Program-made: the position numbers and the translations under genes
Source: Eutreptiella sp. 'Long Island Sound 2002'
Taxonomy: Eukaryota; Protista; Euglenida
DNA length: 64,000 nt
Direction: 5' to 3'
Assembly: GCA_964036045.1 (NCBI GenBank)
Contig: OZ038378.1
Span: forward strand, 53,692,001-53,756,000
Shown here: positions 3,920 to 47,218 of the stretch, one piece after another
How the letters are laid out: each line of letters starts with the position of its first letter
Position numbering within the stretch: position 1 is the first letter of the stretch
Notes under the pieces: model-generated
What the model was told of the DNA's origin: nothing
What the model saw: only the letters and a program-made list of their open reading frames with translations
Databases searched by the model: none

Positions 3920-4275
3920 GCGTGGCGGTCGCCCAAGTGCGCGAAGGCCGGGGCATGGGCAATCACATGCCCATGTGAGTGCAAGGTGTGCTTGCTTGTG
4001 TGTTTGCTTTGTTCAATGGCAAATTGGATGAAATTCACGTGGAATTCGTACCAAATTCGTACGAATTTTGTTCGAATTTCGTACCAATTTCACGTGAATA
4101 AATTTCTGTGAATATTGAGGCAATGTGGAATTCGTACGACATTGGTACGAATTTCGTACGAATTTCAGACGAAATTCTGTGAATTTCGTCCAATTTCTTC
4201 GTTTTGTCGTTGCATTGCTCCATGTTTGCTCGCCCATTCTCAATTGGTGCCTTGCACACTTCTCCCCTTCTGTAG

Positions 4276-38393: not shown

Positions 38394-39152
38394 TGGGGTG
38401 CAGCCAAGGAAGGGTGGCCTAGGAACTCCCCGTAAAATGACAGTAGTTCACCGCTCAAGTACCGGACCACACTTATGTGGGGTGTTTTGGGTGTCAAAAT
38501 AAACGTATAGGAACTATCACGACCCCGGTGTCGGACCAACTTAGACGGCCCAAGTTGCCCGGCCCGGTAAATCGGCCCAAAACACCCAAAAAGGGCCATT
38601 TCGGCCGGTGGGAAATTTCATAGCTTTTTTTTTAGTCATTCAGACGCGTACCTAAATTTGACTGCTTGACAGCCTGTTTTTGTGGTTCTCATATCCACGC
38701 ACACAAACCCAGGTGACTACGCATGGTCAATTTTTACGATTCAGTGAACAAGTTTTGCTTTGTGTTGTGTTGTCTTTGTCCACCTGTGTACCCTTCTCTT
38801 GGAATTTGGAAAAGTGTCTAGAACCAAACACTCTTTGAAATCCCACCCCCGTCAAACCCAGTTTTTGAGGTCGCAGTGTTTGGTTCCAGCCAAACTAAAC
38901 AATTTACACCTTTTCAGGCGGGGGGGGGGGGGGCTCACCAGGTGTTTGTTCCCAGTGTCAAACGTCCTCTGTACACCCCCATAATATGGAGAATGTGTCT
39001 GTTTCCAGACATTTTGGTGAAATTCCGTGATTGCGATACACATTTTATTGAACGGTGTTTGGTTCTAGACACTCTCCTCCTATTGTTTGGTCACTGAGCA
39101 GGTTTGTTTCGTTGTTGTTCACCGTTTTGTTTAGTCTGGTCCTGTTCCACTG

Positions 39153-41202
39153 TTGATGAGCCAGATGATCAGTGCTGCAACAGATCCCTTTGGTCTCCTG
39201 CGTGACTTCTTACACGGAGCGAAATATGGTACACCGTTGGAGCTTATCGATGCCGCTTTACGCGATGAGGAACCACGTGCAGCCCTGCTTGTGGACTTCT
39301 ACACACACATGAGGGTCAACCGGCCAACCAGACGCAGTATGGCAACCTTGACTAAAGCTCATGGGCAATCATTGTGGCCAAGGTGGTATGGAGTGTTTGC
39401 ACGCCAGGTGTACAAGGTGATGCAACTCTGTAGGAAGATGGCCCTGCCAAAGGAAAAGGCTGTTGGCTCACTGCTAAGTGCATCCAGGGGGATGCGGAGA
39501 CAGTTGTCAGAGGCAGGTTTTGCTGCGGGCCGCTTACCGCCTTTGCAGCAACAGGCACATGCCAGAACAAACGCCATCTGGAGATCAATGGCAGGGAAGC
39601 AGGTGGTGGTGCAATTTGACAACTGGTATCGCAGACGGTACTGCAGTGACCCGGTACGACCTGATTGCTGTTTGAACGTCACTACCATTTAAGTGTTGCA
39701 TACAACTGCCATTGCTATGTACCCTCGTTTCCCTACACTTGACGATCTTCTCCAACGTATCCCGCAAACAGCACAAACCATAGTAGCCAGTTTCCGGGAG
39801 TTTTCATGAGCGGTGGACGCTTTGAGGCGAGATCCAGCGAAGGCCCAATATGTACGGGTTCCACTAGATGTGCACCGAGACAACATTCGTTCACTGCAAT
39901 GGTACCCCCCGACGCCAGCGGACCTGGTCTCCAGCTCCAATGAGGACTTGCTCCACATCATGGAACAATGCCTAGCCATTCAGGTTCACACACGCCATGT
40001 CATGCCCCTCTTGATGGATGAAAATATATTCTACAGAGTTGCCATGTTCATGTACAATCGGACATACAACCCCTTTAACTTGGCCGAGTAATATGCCACT
40101 GTCCCAATGCTGTACGGCTGCTGGCACCCTTATAAGGATGTGTGTACCATGATCCACGGTAAGTTCTTCCCCATATTGGGGTACCTTGGGCAGCGAGTGC
40201 CCGCGGTAGATGACGAGATCATGTGCCACCCGAAGCTGTTGCACGTTGAGAAGCAACTTTGTGCCCTACTGTTAGCCACACACAACGTTGAGGACCGCAT
40301 CGTACACAAGGAGACTTCAATTATGCAATTTCCAAAGGCAGTCTGCAAGCTACCACTGGTATGGTTGAGTGGACCGAAGAACCTCCTGCACTTATACATT
40401 CCGGCTGCGCTCCTCCTTGGAAACTTAGTTTGTGAATGCAAATGCGATGGTTGATCAACGGGGACAGGCCGTACAGCCCGCAAAGTATTGGAGTTGAGTT
40501 TGGTATTGATTGTAGCCTTCACAATGGACACTGACCGCAACATCACCTATGTACGCACCCTATATGTTGCCCTTCTGTTTTGGTTACCCTCGAATGACAC
40601 CCTTGGGCTGTTGTTATGCTGAGGTGCCCCTAGAGGCCATGTTGAGTCGTCTCGGATCTAGGTGCCGTGCATACCCCCAGATGAAGACTTTTGACCAGAC
40701 ATTGGACCTGTTTTTGAGCATGGCACTACCAAACCGAGGGGAAAAGAAGCCACGGGGGCGAATTCGCAGTGGACTGGTTGCCATTATGTCGTCACGGCTA
40801 CGCAGGTTCCTGTTGGCCATTACAACGAACCGCATGGTCCATGTTCAATGGAACAGTGGAAAGAAGGCAGCATTTACCGCTGTCCCTGAGGACTTGAAAT
40901 TTCCAGCGCAACTAGTGGACAACGGAGGTGAGGCCCTGTACCAGAGACTGTTGACTAGATCCCTCTCCACAGTGACACATGCGGCGCGTTCGCCCACGGA
41001 TGACGTCTCATGTCTGTTGAGAATCATTCTTTCAGGCAGAGACCCCGCCGATCATGCAGGCCGAGATGCACAGGCTCAGCGGGTGCGGCATGCAGCAATT
41101 GCGGTAGCAGATGATGGCGATGAGGCCCCGGAAGCTGCAATTGTCTCGGATTCAAGTTCACACAGGTCTGTGAGGGACTTGATAGTGGAGGTGGACACAT
41201 AG
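39153..41202 (+). pseudogene. Academ-like (DUF6589-type) DDE transposase
   Basis: VVVQFDNW, LLMDENIFYRV, LYGCWHPYK, YVRTL and EVPLEAMLSRL, an order resembling the DN / D / GxxH / E motifs of Academ-type transposases. In-frame stops. Confidence 0.55.
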
Positions 41203-42045
41203 GACGATGAACCACCACCTGTTGTCCTACGGCAAGAAATGGAGGAATTTGAGGTTGTGAGTCTCGAGGATGATCCGATGGACTGCTAACATCCCACCCA
41301 CGTGGCCAAGATGTGTCAAAGGTGTGTTTCTGGCACCAGACACAGGGCTTGAGTTGGTTACTACAGCAACGAGGTACCTGAGCAGAGGCCACTATTGTCA
41401 ACCAACACAGCGCTGGACTGATGAGATGCGCGCGTACGTGCACTGTTGCATTGCTGCACATCCCTGTTTCTCCGCAAAACCACAGCATGCGACCTTGACC
41501 AACCGAATACCCGGTTCAGGACGCCAGCAGCATAAACACTGCATGCGCGTGTGTTTAGAAGTAGATACCAACTGTTTGCGCCCCATCCAGTGCCCGGAAA
41601 AGTACATGCCTGTTTGGAATGAGACAATTAATCGTTCTGCACCCGTTTCATATCGTGAAGGCAAGCTGTTGTGTCTGGAACCACACAGACTTTGTTTTTT
41701 GCCCTCCATTGTCTTCAAGGTCATCTGGTCTATTTCTCGGAAATGCTAGAATCACATTGGGTAGCCTGCTAAGTCGGAACTATACTGCATATGTGTCTAG
41801 AAACAGACACTGACTGTTTATGCCCTATCAATTGCCAGAACATTACATGCTTGTTTTGAACCACACAAAAAAATTGTTTCGCACCGGTTGCACACTCCAA
41901 CAGCAAACTTTTGTGTCTGGAACCAGACACACTGTGTTTTTTACACCCCGTTGTATTAAACATGATGTGGTATGAGTGTGGAAATGGTATGCTCACGTCG
42001 GCAAGCGTGGAATGTTGAAATCACATTGCCCAACGGCCCGCCCTT

Positions 42046-42992
42046 GTGACATTTTGCGTCTTGCGCCCAGTTGGTTCCAACATGTGTGACCTTACGCAAG
42101 GTAGCAGTAAACCCTCTGCAGACCCCTCAATTGATCTGGCATCCCATTTCAGTGGCGTGGACGATGCCCCATCCAAGTCCAAACTGAAACGTGGTGACAC
42201 ACCGAAGGGAAAAGATGTTCAACTGAAAATTGGTGACCATACCGAAGACCAGGAGGTCCTTGTGCCCATCAGCAGACTGCAATTGGACAAAAAAAGGGAG
42301 CATGGTCAAATGAGAGTGCTGGATTCAAGATCTTGTCCAGGGCAAGATGACAGAGCTACGCGAGAATCCACCAGGTGCAGCAAAAATCCGAAGCATAGTG
42401 TGGCGTGGCGTAGTGGGGCAGTACTGGATCTTATCGGGGCAGCATATCGCAGAGGCCTGTCGACGAATCGCAAGGGAGTATATGAATGCCCATTTGAAAC
42501 TGCCAAAATGGTCAGTGCAATTTCTTGTTAAGTGGTTCGTACGGATGTCACTCTGCACATATGGGAGTCAATCGCTGGCATGTCACAAGTACATCGACTG
42601 TGCCAGTGCACTGTGACACTGCATGCTACCTTCCCACACCGGGGAAATATTCCGCGCCTGTGACGTCCATCATGATCTGCCCGTTGTCCTGCGTGACTGG
42701 CCGCTTCATTTGTGTGTGTGTGGGGCATTAACTGCTGTGACCACACGTCGTATTAGAGGCTGTGCAGTCTGCCACGACCTTGCCAAAGCTGTCTACACGG
42801 ATGGAACTCCTGCGTGTTGAGCTGGACCGCGATGAACTGGAGGAGAAATCCATACGAGAACACCTGGGAGTGCTGTACGTGAAGGGTGGCTACACAATGA
42901 AAGAGGGGACACTGGTATGCCTGCGCCTGCACAGGGTGGAAGTATGCGAATTGTGTGGTGGTAGCCAATTTTTGAACGACAAGGCTGTTTAG
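42046..42992 (+). pseudogene. Element C accessory gene, unknown, Cys/His-rich C-terminus
   Basis: Chain of overlapping frames (42046, 42347, 42623, 42762 ORFs) with coding-like composition ending VCELCGG. Confidence 0.4.
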
Positions 42993-43269
42993 CAGACCGT
43001 TGTTTGGTTCCAGACACAAGACGACCTGATCTTCGTTTCATGGGTGTCAATAATTAGGTGTTGTCTGGTACCACACACAACAGGAGGAATTCTGCTTTGA
43101 CAGGCCGCATTAGTGAGTTGTTGTCTGGTTCCACACAAGGAGGTCCAAGCACACACTTTGACGAGGCTAAAAGAAGTTGTGTCTGGTTCCAAACGCAAGC
43201 GGGACACGGTCTGGTCTGCGAACGATCCAATTGCGCCAAATGTCTGTTATGAGAAGCAACAGAACGTAA

Positions 43270-44348
43270 GTGAAGTCTGCTTATGGTAGAAATACATCAG
43301 GTGTCTGGTTCCAGACAGATGTGACAACCTTCGTTGTTGCATGGGACAACTTTCCTAGCCAGGCACGCATGTGCCGTGTTCGCTCTGCAGTAGACTGTCG
43401 GAAAACTCTGGTTTCCGATTGCCGCCTGGGTGCAAGTGATGCTCTCGATGGATTGGAGAGGCGTGGACTGCCAGTAAAGTTGCACTTTTGGAATTGCCTC
43501 GCAGGCCTCGTCCCACCTGACCTTGAGGAGGTTACGCAGTACCTGGGCTCCAGCAATGTGTCACTGCCAATGATTACAAAGAAGGCAAAGCAACTGAAGG
43601 CTCCACGTTTGTGGGAACATCATTTGTGCCACCTAGACAACCACTTGGTTGACCCCAGTCGCAAAACGCTTGCAGAACGGGCCCGTTGTGCACAGTGTCT
43701 CTTGTCGAAGAGCCATGTCACCTTCAAGACGTACCCTTGGAAGTGGTCTGAGCAGAACCGCTGGCCCCCGTGGAAGTATGTCGTAACTGCTGCAATCTGG
43801 AGTGACCCCACGTATGCTCCCCTCCGTGATGCCCTTCGGCGTCCCCTTGTGAACCCCGATATCAAGATTGCTGCTGATGTCAACTTCATCACCGTGAACG
43901 TTGGCTCTGAGGCCCCAGAGGCGGGGGTGACTGACAGCAAGTCCGTGGATGGGGTCATGCATATCACAGGGATGGCACCTGGTACTCCGCTGCACTCTAC
44001 GGTGGCCAACATGCCGTATTGCTGATCGTCGTTGAAGTTCCTAAGGGACATATGGAAGGCATCCATTCTGTTTTCAGTCGCAATTCGGTGTCTGGGACGC
44101 TTGTTCCATTTGTTGGCGAGGCTTGTGACGTCTTGGAAGTGCTAGATGGTCTCCGAATGTTGCACGACAACGAGGGTTTGACAACAATTCACGTGGCTTG
44201 CTTTATTCTGGGATCTCTCACACAGCTGTACTCGATGGGATTCACTGAGGTGTGGGTAGTCTCCAAAATTCTGCTACCCAAGAAGGTATTACTGTCAGCT
44301 CCTGCTACCTGCTGCCTGCTACCAAAGTCACGTTGTCTGCACCGTTAA
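43270..44348 (+). pseudogene. Element C accessory gene, unknown; homolog at 61400-62600
   Basis: WKWSEQNRWPPWKYVVTAAIWSDPTYAPLRDALRRP aligns with WVWSESDQWPSWDAISKASMWSADEWESFRIILAKP. Confidence 0.6.
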
Positions 44349-45859
44349 ATCCTAAAGTTTGTCTGGAACCAGACACTTACGAGGCAGAATGCGTCCTAAG
44401 AGGGGTGAATTGTGGGAAAGTGTGTGAAACCAGACCACATCTGCTAGTCCAGCTGCACCAATAGGGGTGTCACACTCACTGTTTCCTTATAGAGGTGCCT
44501 CGCTACTTTGCCTTTTCTCGTGATCCGTTGGTGAACCAGCTGTGTACGGAGGTTGTTGGGTTTGTCATGCACCACCTGGCAGATGCAGTACCCTAAGAAG
44601 GAACTACCCTGTGGTTCTTGGTTATCAGTGGTTCTGTACAGCTGGCCTGCAGTCTGGCAGTGCGCATGCCGGTACCCATCAGTGTGGTGTTAGGCTCGCC
44701 CACGGAGCAGGAGTCTATTGCAGACGTTGGTGCCCTCGTATGCAGCAATTTACGCATCGCTGATGGGCTCAGCCCAATTCCCTGGAATGTTTGAAAATTT
44801 CACGGAGGGTTGCCCTATGGACTCCAGCTGTGTGCCTGAGAAGGCAGAGGGGGAGTAGGACTTTGAAGATAAAGTGGAAGACGTGGGCGCCACCCCAGAC
44901 AATGCTGCGTATTGTACACCGAAGCAGGCACGGGGCCCTGGCAAAAAAGGTGGTCGCACATGGAAGGGAGACGAGAACAAAGCCTCCTCATCCCAGACAA
45001 AAGGCAAAGGTAACAAAAAAGCCGAGGCATCACCTCCTTATGAGCCTGCAGCCGCGGGATCCGATTCTCAGTCGTCTGCTTCCAAGAGGGCCAAGATTGG
45101 GTTTCGGGCATGGAAGGACCGATTCAATGGCTCCAAGAAGAACTAAACCTGCATTGTTGCAGCTGCTGTGGTTGCACAGTGTTGTTGTAAACCTGCTTAG
45201 TGACCACATTATCTATGCATAACATGTAATCATTGTGGCACCTTGTTGGCGTGTCAGTCCGCTCCCTTGGTCCCAGTGGTCCATTTTGACGATTTTCCAT
45301 TCACCGACACGCGGCTGACAGTCCTTTGTCACTTTTTTATGACATTTTGTTGCGGACCACGATTGCTTTTGTGGAACACGGTACTTTTTCATCAGGTTAC
45401 TCGTCTTGTGTGTGGAACCAGACAATTTTTTGTGATTACTATCCCTATGTAGCAGGTTTTGGTATGATCTGTCTGTTTCCAGACAAACTTCAGTATTTCA
45501 CTGTCTGCTAGACAAAAATTTGAGTAACATGGTACGCGTCGACGAGTAGTGCCTCCGCTGGTGTAGTGATATTCAAGCGTGCATAGACACACATGCATTC
45601 TGTGGGCTTCCTCCTCAGAACTTGACTTTTTTCTGCATATTTCACAGGGCCTAGCCTCAAGTTGGTTTTGTGCGCAAAGTGCCAAAAACCTATATGGGGG
45701 TAGTCAAAAACGAGGGGAAACAAACGTGCGCTGCTTGTTGCTAAAATTTCAGCCGTGTAGAACGCGTTTTTGATGACCGTCATGCGGTGACATTTTTGTC
45801 GGGGGTCCATGGGGGGGGGGGGAACTTGGGCCGTCTAAGACCAAGGGAGGCCTTTTTTT

Positions 45860-45985
45860 TTCGGGCAGGAACCCCCCTAGGAGCCCCTTCCTAGACCCTC
45901 CTTGCACCCTTCCTGGATTCCTTCTTGGTAGGAACCCACCTTCCTATACAGGAACCCCCCCTTCCTATGACCCTTCTTGTCCCTC
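45860..45985. repeat. E3 subterminal CCTTCCT / AGGAAGG blocks (inverted copy at 49480-49625; also 47450-47670)
   Basis: CCCTTCCTATGACCCTTC at about 45958 is the inverse of GAAGGGTCATAGGAAGGG at about 49484. Confidence 0.8.
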
Positions 45986-47218
45986 AAAGGCAGCCTGGTT
46001 TTCCCAATGTCTGCTCGTCCCTTTGCTTGGGATTGGATGGCGGCCGTCACAGGTCCCGCCGGTGCACGTGGTTGCTCCCTTCCGGAGGGGCAAACGTTCC
46101 ACGACACCCCGATGCCAACCAACTCTGCCTCGATTTGGCCGCCGGGCACGACCGTTGGCCGGGTGCGCATCACCAAGTCCATCCTCCGCGACAGGGACCC
46201 CTATGCCCTCTCGGACCTCATTGCGGAGACGGTGCGCTGCAACCCCGATATCACTGCCTTCCACGTGCGGCCCAGCTGAGCGGACTACCCCTGCTTGCTG
46301 GAGTCCCTGTCCACCTGCTTGCCCAGCGACCACGCCCGGATCCACAACCACTACCCTGTGGATGGGGAGCCGCCCACCACCCTCCGCTTCGCTTCCACGA
46401 AGCCCAAGCCCGCCACTTTCGCTAAGGAGGGGTAGTACAAGGAGGCAGCCAAGAGAAAGTTGTTCCTCTTCCATCCGCGGCCTTCCGGTGAGGAGACCCT
46501 CACCGTCTACTCCCTCTGCAAATGCACAGCGTGCGAGTGGGACGGCGACGGCCGCGGGCTCACCTTGCCGAGTGCCTATGCGGCCAGCGGGCTGCTTGCC
46601 CTCCCCGTCACCTCCACCCCGCTCTTTGTGGCGTACGACGACCCCCTGTTGGAGCTGCCGAGTGACTCCCCCACTGCCGTGAAAAGGGACCTTAGCTAGC
46701 TTGCCAGCCTGCAGCACTTGTTCATCCGGGGCTTTTTTGCGGTGTATGAGGTGGAGGAGGCGCACAAGGAGGCATTTGCGATCGCCGAGGAGCCCTGGGC
46801 CTGCATCTTCAACCACGACCACCCAGTTGCCGGCCGAGCCGAGGACCCGCCGGACCGCAAGATGGTGTGGGGGAAGCCGGAGGACATGTCCAAGCATCCG
46901 AATGGGGAGGAACACATCCACATTCTAGACCTGCCGCGCTTGACGGCCATGGTCACGCAGGTGAAGGCCAAGCTGGAGGCGATCTTGGGCAAGACGCTGC
47001 ACGTCATGACGCAAGGGTACATCGAGTCCATCACCCGCGCTCGACAACTGCCGCACCGCGATTTTCCACCATTGTCACTTCATGTGGATGGCATCGCCCT
47101 CTCCGTGTCTTGGGCACTGTTGACGGATATCCTCGACGATGATGTTTGCGCACAGGATAGTAGTCACGTCGTGCGCAGGGCGCGTAAGGTGGTGCCACGA
47201 GCGGGGTGCTTGACATAG
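45977..47218 (+). pseudogene. E3 cargo gene 1: N-terminal domain plus truncated PhyH-like dioxygenase
   Basis: PPGTTVG, DLIAETVRCNP and YSLCKC...GLTLP match the E1/E2 domain; WACIFN...RARQLPHRD gives the HxD motif. Confidence 0.7.

Follow-up and report, generated by a model that had tools for sequence, protein, structure and literature searches.

To our knowledge, the ways in which transposons recognise their own DNA and escape silencing are understood in detail for no more than a few plant elements. En/Spm (with its TnpA 12-mers), Ac and Hermes carry multiple short subterminal repeats that are bound by the transposase, some of them arranged as inverted pairs, within a few hundred bp of the ends, and the subterminal repeats of Spm double as promoter control sites. 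As for ParB and its sites, parS of P1 adjoins parB according to the annotation, and sopC of F consists of twelve 43-bp repeats, each with a 16-bp inverted repeat. In Arabidopsis, the motifs of VANC in the Mutator-like elements VANDAL21 and VANDAL6 accumulate as tandem repeats upstream of the transposase gene and in the introns of the accessory genes (Hosaka et al. 2017, PMC5735166). The VANC motifs differ between related families, their specificity comes from site density, and both binding and demethylation have been shown experimentally (PMC5735166). In the Plavaka element of Bostrychia moritziana, the accessory gene PAG3, whose product combines a ParB-like N-terminus with a 2OG oxygenase, adjoins tandem inverted-repeat arrays (Petroll et al. 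2025, 10.1101/2025.02.11.637652). Its authors only infer that PAG3 binds, and may modify, its own element (10.1101/2025.02.11.637652). A protein of Ectocarpus Sola1 is ParB-like and carries a DNA methyltransferase, and such proteins possibly form a new class of accessory proteins (PMC12477816).

The window, by which we mean the whole 64-kb stretch of DNA analysed here, is repeat-rich eukaryotic DNA. Our analysis showed that an 18-bp palindrome, GTGTCTGG-WW-CCAGACAC, recurs in it at steps of about 60 bp and that all occurrences are within one element. The palindrome GTGTCTGGWWCCAGACAC, searched with up to 3 mismatches, matched the 64-kb window 16 times where 0.04 would be expected, and none of 100 shuffled windows reached 16. 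This confirmed the regularity that a preliminary description of the same DNA had pointed out. The units that it had named were all recovered (43000, 43061, 43121, 43179 and 43301; 38814, 38876, 38995 and 39055; 41671, 41793 and 41913; 44359; 45408 and 45469), and one which it had placed in brackets, at 43241, proved to be a real unit that has decayed here, an intact TGTCTGGTACCAGAC being still present there in other copies of the same subfamily. The decayed units at 38942, 41550 and 41610 are good in the family consensus. All 16 matches fall between 38814 and 45486, inside a 7.3-kb transposon that extends from 38540 to 45839, and the spacing in this copy is 58-62 bp. Genome-wide, the exact 18-mer has 151 occurrences, against 1 for the reversed control. 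The view that the units are not protein-coding, previously argued from their different reading frames, was right, though for the simpler reason that they are located in introns and intergenic DNA.

The CRISPR-looking run that drew attention to this DNA (42995-43320) is one cluster of a transposon design that has published parallels and is informative in detail. The element is a cut-and-paste transposon with terminal inverted repeats (TIRs), and the copy in the window is dead. Its TIR pair (38540-38565 and 45814-45839) begins with CTTAGACGGCCCAAGTTGCC. We aligned 19 copies with their flanks, 18 of them fetched from the genome, and identity rose from about 0.5 to more than 0.95 exactly at 38540. 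Every aligned copy starts with CTTAGACGGCCCAAGTTGCC and has its own 5-bp target duplication, and TIRs together with 5-bp duplications were observed on at least 15 copies. A genome search found at least 70 related places in the 2.28-Gb genome, with dozens of copies at 85-90% identity.

Two genes make up the element, a DDE transposase gene and a multi-exon accessory gene, and a single palindrome of 16-18 bp, repeated at a fixed interval of about 60 bp, fills nearly all of the internal non-coding DNA. Counted in the family consensus, it forms five clusters with 21 units altogether (Table 1). Fifteen of these units are deep inside, within introns or between the two genes and as far as 3.6 kb from either end, and the outermost 200-350 bp of the consensus element contain none. 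In the window copy, cluster 1 is 275-533 bp from the left end and stops 84 bp upstream of the transposase start codon, the solo unit and cluster 2 follow the transposase stop and precede gene 2, and cluster 5 is 354-432 bp from the right end.

Table 1. Features of the transposon copy in the window (positions of the window) and palindrome units of the family consensus
Feature	Position	Strand	Units	Remarks
Whole transposon copy, decayed	38540..45839	+		TIRs of ~26 bp; 5-bp duplication ACCAA
Cluster 1	38814..39072	.	38814, 38876, 38942 (decayed), 38995, 39055
Gene 1, DDE transposase	39156..41289	+		Stops and frameshifts in the window copy
Solo unit 41326 and cluster 2	41326..41930	.	41326; 41550 (decayed here), 41610 (decayed here), 41671, 41793, 41851, 41913
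Gene 2, exons 1-2	42082..42914	+		From homology to sister ORF2 and consensus reading frames
Gene 2, extra short intron	~42521-42768			Bounds approximate; no family palindrome
Gene 2, intron b	42915..43390	+		GT at 42915, AG at 43389-43390
Inverted segment	42958..43374	.		Window copy (W), L028, L029 and L030 versus 13 other copies
Cluster 3	within intron b		43000, 43061, 43121, 43179, 43241 (decayed), 43301
Gene 2, exon 3, decayed	43391..44285	+
Gene 2, intron c	44286..44494	+		AAG/GTAT ... AG/GTGCC
Palindrome pair in intron c			44359-44376 and 44420-44437
Gene 2, last exon	44495..45146	+		Basic tail
Cluster 5	45408..45486	.	Pair 45408-45425 and 45469-45486
Consensus units, left			4	275-525 bp from left end, stopping 84 bp short of the transposase ATG
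Consensus units, inter-gene gap			1 solo and 6 arrayed
Consensus units, intron b			6
Consensus units, intron c			2
Consensus units, right			2	357-435 bp from right end

Gene 1 has a consensus ORF of about 711 aa, and tblastn with intact copies maps its homology to 39378-41283. As judged from the fold matches of the modelled core of its sister orthologue (from the sister family described below), gene 1 is the transposase of an unnamed family with a P/hAT-like fold. The AlphaFold2 core of this orthologue (123-560, pLDDT about 80-90) matched the P element transposase at Z 10.1, with 276 residues aligned, and then Hermes (Z 9.0), Transib (Z 6.6) and RAG1 (Z 6.5); the top 16 rows of the fold search were all DDE transposases. 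The N-terminal 70-120 residues are helical, modelled with low confidence and unalignable between the two families. The ESM Atlas assignment of gene 1 to DUF6589 (0.94) was set aside, as Pfam gave no confirmation, and the superfamily is not settled by the 5-bp duplication together with this lead. No match to Pfam was found for any ORF of the window copy, for the best copies or for the sister exons. A search of ORF1 against 5.8 billion proteins for relatives outside the genome returned only copies from the same species and eight proteins at 28-37% identity, and a metagenome scan with the distant protein match P0015 gave no match. Nine metagenome matches to the shared TIR pattern were taken as chance; no transposase accompanied them, and three were GC-rich contigs sharing 21 nt.

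The reading frames labelled ORFs 2-4 appear to be exons of one gene, since homologous peptides flank canonical splice sites in the comparison with the sister family. Intron b has the donor CTG/GTATGC and the acceptor CTCTGCAG/, lies at the position of sister intron 1 between homologous flanking peptides, and contains the CRISPR-looking run entirely. At the position of intron c, the sister family has no intron. Public gene calls for this genome read through the gene 2 introns and translate the palindromes, and therefore need correction. Database searches with gene 2 were made exon by exon and not with the joined protein. Searched singly in this way, the later exons gave no Pfam or PDB-sequence match and no detectable oxygenase or methyltransferase domain; a weak AAA-like lead came from the ESM Atlas (0.83).

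The N-terminus of gene 2 is weakly ParB/sulfiredoxin-like, by evidence that is coherent but weak. A 38-sequence profile of exon 1, built from a search of 1.84 billion proteins, matched seven different sulfiredoxins at E 0.05-0.1, which is below significance. All of these matches fell on the same 55 residues, with GGQH aligned to the GG(C)HR core. Ten long matches from that search of 1.84 billion proteins were without a ParB_N domain, the N-terminus had no match in Pfam, and hhalign of exon 1 against P1 ParB gave none either. A PF02195 search over the genome misses this family; what it found were small contigs and a single unrelated locus. For exon 1, AlphaFold2 gave a model with a pLDDT of 35, too poor to use. 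No HTH was identified in gene 2, and the GERRxR arginines are absent, the motif being GGQH. In true ParB, the DNA sequence is read by a domain other than the Srx-like one.

Information content in the family consensus is 1.64 bits per position for the 18-mer, as against 0.24 for the spacers and 0.11 for the background. The perfect 16-nt core TGTCTGG-WW-CCAGACA is present in 16 of the 21 units, with symmetrical half-sites and a centre that is always A/T. Among six variant positions of the consensus units, one is RNA-tolerable, and none is compensatory or wobble-biased. Although the spacers of different clusters are unrelated, the mean of 13 adjacent steps is 60.2 bp (SD 1.5). When aligned to each other, the spacers are near random between clusters (28% identity, with a null of 25%) and show kinship by tandem duplication within clusters (37%). 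Cluster 2 has a 242-bp higher-order repeat of four units, and cluster 3 a two-type repeat of 119-122 bp whose spacers are 92-100% alike. Comparison of the arrays among copies revealed gain and loss of units: the length classes of cluster 3 (309-311 bp with 4 units, 415-431 bp with 6 units, 535 bp and 655 bp) indicate that units are gained or lost in two-unit blocks of about 120 bp. The earlier suggestion of an old 60-bp tandem repeat, in which the palindrome alone is conserved, is thus correct for the origin of the arrays. Weak shared spacer positions about 22-36 nt after the palindrome start (0.59-0.77 bits) suggest that the common period could be partly inherited from one ancestral 60-bp unit.

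After insertion, the copies have decayed from the consensus by 4.3% in the palindrome, 5.0% in the spacers and 3.4% in the ORFs. Uniform decay that includes the palindrome was therefore found in dead copies but not in the master sequence of the family. Since dead copies lose the palindrome like the rest while the consensus keeps it, the constraint appears to have acted on active master elements and not on inserted copies. C-to-T decay in dead copies amounts to 5.1% at CG and 5.2% at CWG, versus 1.9% at CHH and 2.4% at CCG. This pattern may be the footprint of CG and CWG methylation, and is an indirect hint that copies are methylated. Each palindrome of this family contains two CWG sites, and that of the sister family two CWG and two CG sites. 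Together with the CG/CWG decay, these sites make a link between the palindrome and methylation control plausible.

Part of intron b that includes cluster 3 is inverted in four copies, the window copy among them (Table 1). In global alignment, this segment scores 303 with the reverse complement and -17 when the orientation is left unchanged, and the inversion is also seen as opposite-strand BLAST matches. Both breakpoints are in intron b, outside the palindromes; as they lie 43 and 56 bp outside the nearest ones, inversion through palindrome-mediated recombination was ruled out. On non-array DNA, the four inverted copies group as a single clade, and each has a target duplication of its own. The inversion therefore arose once, inside intron b, and the inverted master kept transposing. 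This inverted subfamily (A) has two private spacers that are absent from all B copies; their length is unchanged, and the palindromes on either side stay in phase.

A sister family was found in the same genome through P0015. It is very young: its copies are about 99% alike with intact ORFs, in an element of 6.5 kb. It has a transposase that is 35% identical (E 1e-92), a related TIR (CTTAGGCGTCACAAGTTGCC) and a homologous second gene. Its palindrome is a different one, of 20 bp, CTGGCCGAAATTTCGGCCAG, which is present in 13 perfect copies at steps of 70.1 bp (SD 1.2): five are ahead of the transposase and three behind it, two introns have one each, and the 3' side has a single unit and a pair. 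One sister copy has lost exactly one 20-mer. The sister intron homologous to intron b holds one sister-type unit, versus six own-type units here. Because the homologous intron carries each family's own palindrome, the palindromes appear to have been replaced in concert between the families. Intron c and the second intron of the sister family are at non-homologous positions, yet each has the palindrome of its own family. In this comparison of only two families, the periods of 60 and 70 bp are separated by one helical turn, and CTGG...CCAG frames the palindrome in each. A probable third family was glimpsed with P0014; family specificity as described here rests on two families.

Compared with the Plavaka element with PAG3, the element is alike in being a DDE transposon with TIRs, with an accessory gene (weakly Srx-like here) and family-specific inverted-repeat arrays. 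The hosts differ, a red alga in that case and a euglenid in this one, and our element has an unnamed P/hAT-like transposase and a 5-bp duplication. In Plavaka, the arrays adjoin the accessory gene, whereas here they are also in introns and near both ends, at a strict step of 60 or 70 bp. PAG3 has a fused effector domain, but none was detectable in gene 2, and the likeness to ParB is much weaker here. VANC is similar in that a short motif is dense in the non-coding DNA of its own family, introns included, and in both cases there is tandem-repeat turnover. However, the VANC motifs are asymmetric, 8-9 bp long and in one orientation, whereas those described here are palindromes of 16-20 bp at a fixed step. 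There is also no relation to VANC or to Mutator transposases, as the proteins belong to no Pfam family and the fold is nearest to the P element and Hermes. Binding by VANC is experimental, while the sites in our element are predicted from sequence.

The ParB/parS systems also have arrays of palindromic dimer sites near a ParB/Srx-fold gene (weakly Srx-like in our case), and the geometry of sopC is very similar. Unlike ParABS, the element has two genes only, with no ParA partner, recognisable HTH, GERRxR patch or Pfam ParB_N match. Its sites are in five clusters along a transposon, in a eukaryotic host with mitotic segregation.

We consider it probable that a dimeric protein encoded by the element docks on the palindromes, which would be DNA sites specific to the family. 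Selected dimer sites that are read as DNA are suggested by the same half-sites in all clusters, the A/T centre and the lack of compensatory variants, and also by the tolerated inversion, the kept spacing and the concerted replacement between families. Phased protein-binding sites, one of the three possibilities named in the preliminary description, accordingly have the most support as an explanation for the persistence of palindrome and period; the binding itself we infer. The binder would be the gene 2 protein as the candidate, or, as an alternative, the N-terminus of the transposase. New sites would arise by tandem duplication of blocks of two or four units, after which the palindrome and the spacing would be retained while the spacers drift or are replaced. 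A dimer of the accessory protein or of the transposase N-terminus would bind the sites, and their density may serve the recognition of the element's own DNA. The main candidate for its purpose is control of the chromatin or methylation state of the element, as by VANC in the VANDAL elements; such control has likewise been proposed for algal transposons and their ParB-like accessory proteins. As a second possibility, the protein could help to assemble the transposition complex.

That the arrays are a functionless minisatellite, kept by slippage at hairpins, gene conversion or recent duplication and without selection, seems very unlikely. The clusters clearly expand and contract by tandem duplication, as the length classes of 309-655 bp and the 92-100% alike spacers of cluster 3 testify, the palindrome is lost at a neutral rate in dead copies, and the loss of exactly one 20-mer in a sister copy fits as well. 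This reading covers the growth of the arrays but not their selective retention. Five clusters with near-random spacers share a perfect core and step, palindromes remain where spacers have been replaced, and the same architecture with another palindrome exists in an independent family. Conversion confined to 16-18 bp amid unrelated 42-bp spacers is also implausible. A CRISPR-like adaptive array or store of foreign spacers can be discounted almost completely: the geometry of short palindromic repeats with dissimilar spacers of about 42 nt, which had prompted the comparison, holds, but the identity does not. The genome, of 2.28 Gb, is eukaryotic, the array occupies part of a transposon gene's intron, and its spacers belong to the element consensus, recur in other copies and are related by tandem duplication. 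Gain and loss proceed in duplicated 120-bp blocks and not by polar acquisition, the repeat is an 18-bp palindrome and not a CRISPR repeat, and the neighbouring ORFs (DDE transposase and orphan accessory gene, with no Pfam match) include no cas-like gene.

The two other alternatives assign a function to the palindrome, in RNA or in transposition alone. RNA hairpins of 7-8 bp in the primary transcript could guide processing or splicing, or be cut into small RNAs. The units are all non-coding, in stretches whose RNA is probably made and later discarded, the folding energy of single units is -11.3 to -16.2 kcal/mol, and the tolerance of inversion would fit too, a palindrome being identical on either strand. 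We nevertheless regard the hairpin array, also named in the preliminary description, as unlikely and without positive support. Pairing is kept at only 1 of 6 variant positions, with no compensatory changes, and the sequence itself, beyond pairing, is identical in all five clusters. The whole intron is no more structured than shuffles (z -1.3), no Rfam match was found over 38400-46000 at E up to 0.1, one intron of gene 2 is without the palindrome, and the strict 60-bp step has no obvious RNA rationale. Quite unlikely, in our estimation, are sites that serve the transposase only, as enhancer-type sites for synapsis or cutting in the style of En/Spm, Ac and Hermes and with no role in chromatin or gene control. 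Like those cut-and-paste elements, this one has multiple short repeats (putative binding sites here); clusters 1 and 5 are a few hundred bp from the ends, the sister arrangement is alike, and the unalignable helical N-terminus of the transposase resembles the expected fast-evolving DNA-reading domain. However, the units are mostly deep in the element, and they are long perfect palindromes at a fixed step. Since the map spans the internal non-coding DNA and spares the outer 200-350 bp, the sites are unlike classical subterminal transposase sites.

For the docking sites, a more far-reaching idea is that the arrays are helically phased loading platforms, from which a ParB/Srx-like protein would polymerise, coat the element and shield its own CG/CWG cytosines from host methylation. 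We hold this to be doubtful. If it were true, the element would be an independent protist counterpart of plant VANC anti-silencing, and palindrome and protein would co-evolve as a private identity tag of each transposon family.

The two families offer natural experiments: an array has been inverted yet the element spread, spacers were swapped while sites and spacing were kept, and the sister family switched both palindrome and period. The sister family, whose genes are intact, whose copies are about 99% alike and whose 13 sites are perfect, is a direct handle for EMSA, ChIP and methylation tests. Should the binder be the ParB/Srx-like protein, Euglenozoa would join the red, green and brown algae in which this newly reported class of ParB-like accessory proteins occurs, and the class would also be found with a different type of transposase. 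A euglenid transposon lineage, with thousands of candidate copies, would provide a very clean case of self-marking with private sites.

Two inversions have touched the same palindrome array in this transposon family, which suggests fragility of these array regions. The second, found in family copy L025, is larger and independent; its flipped block comprises the entire cluster 3 together with exon 3 of gene 2, with one breakpoint in intron b and the other immediately upstream of intron c's two palindromes. Long runs of G (11-14 G) occur in the family adjoining the right TIR, in cluster 1 and in the palindrome-free intron of gene 2, and their lengths differ from copy to copy.

Coordinates of the features in the family and in its sister family
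Feature	Sequence	Position
Decayed transposon copy	window	38540-45839
Copy with the second inversion	L025	G000:C3:14800333-14808092
Run of 11-14 G adjoining right TIR	window	45813-45823
Run of 11-14 G within cluster 1	window	38920-38933
Run of 11-14 G in palindrome-free intron of gene 2	consensus	~4160-4175
Private intron of gene 2	window	44286-44494
Private intron of gene 2	L044 (sister family)	~1500-1630
Degenerate palindrome in transposase coding sequence	L031-L038 (sister family)	~1145 bp from left end
Place of the missing palindrome (unit 3)	L032 (sister family)	flanked by units 277 and 398 from element start

The two families have introns of gene 2 at non-homologous positions, and each of these private introns holds the palindrome of its own family. 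Either such introns are gained and lost fast, or existing introns have been invaded by palindromes. In the sister element L032, a single palindrome is cleanly lost (or absent), as unit 3 of its array is without the 20-bp palindrome and nothing else is missing. The sister palindrome was also found as a degenerate copy (18 of the 20 bases) in the transposase gene, where it translates as LAEIEA; the residues at that place in the window family are unrelated.

Since the public gene calls of this species (P0034 and P0046-P0054) run through the introns of gene 2 and translate the palindrome, for example as GRNFGQ or LAEISA, gene 2 is mis-annotated in public protein sets. True Pfam ParB_N matches, with scores up to 59.8 bits, were confined in this assembly to small contigs (C1777, C1888, C1287, C1322, C999, and others), which may be of bacterial or organellar origin; the sole exception was a weak match at C1:5002265.

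Comparison of 19 family copies (the window copy and L013-L030) showed C-to-T decay of 5.1% at CG and 5.2% at CAG/CTG, versus 2.4% at CCG and 1.9% at CHH, with A/T transitions at 2.5%. The most frequent mutations of the palindrome were CCAG to CTAG and CTGG to CTAG. This decay footprint is an indirect hint that transposons of this euglenid undergo cytosine methylation at CG and CWG sites.
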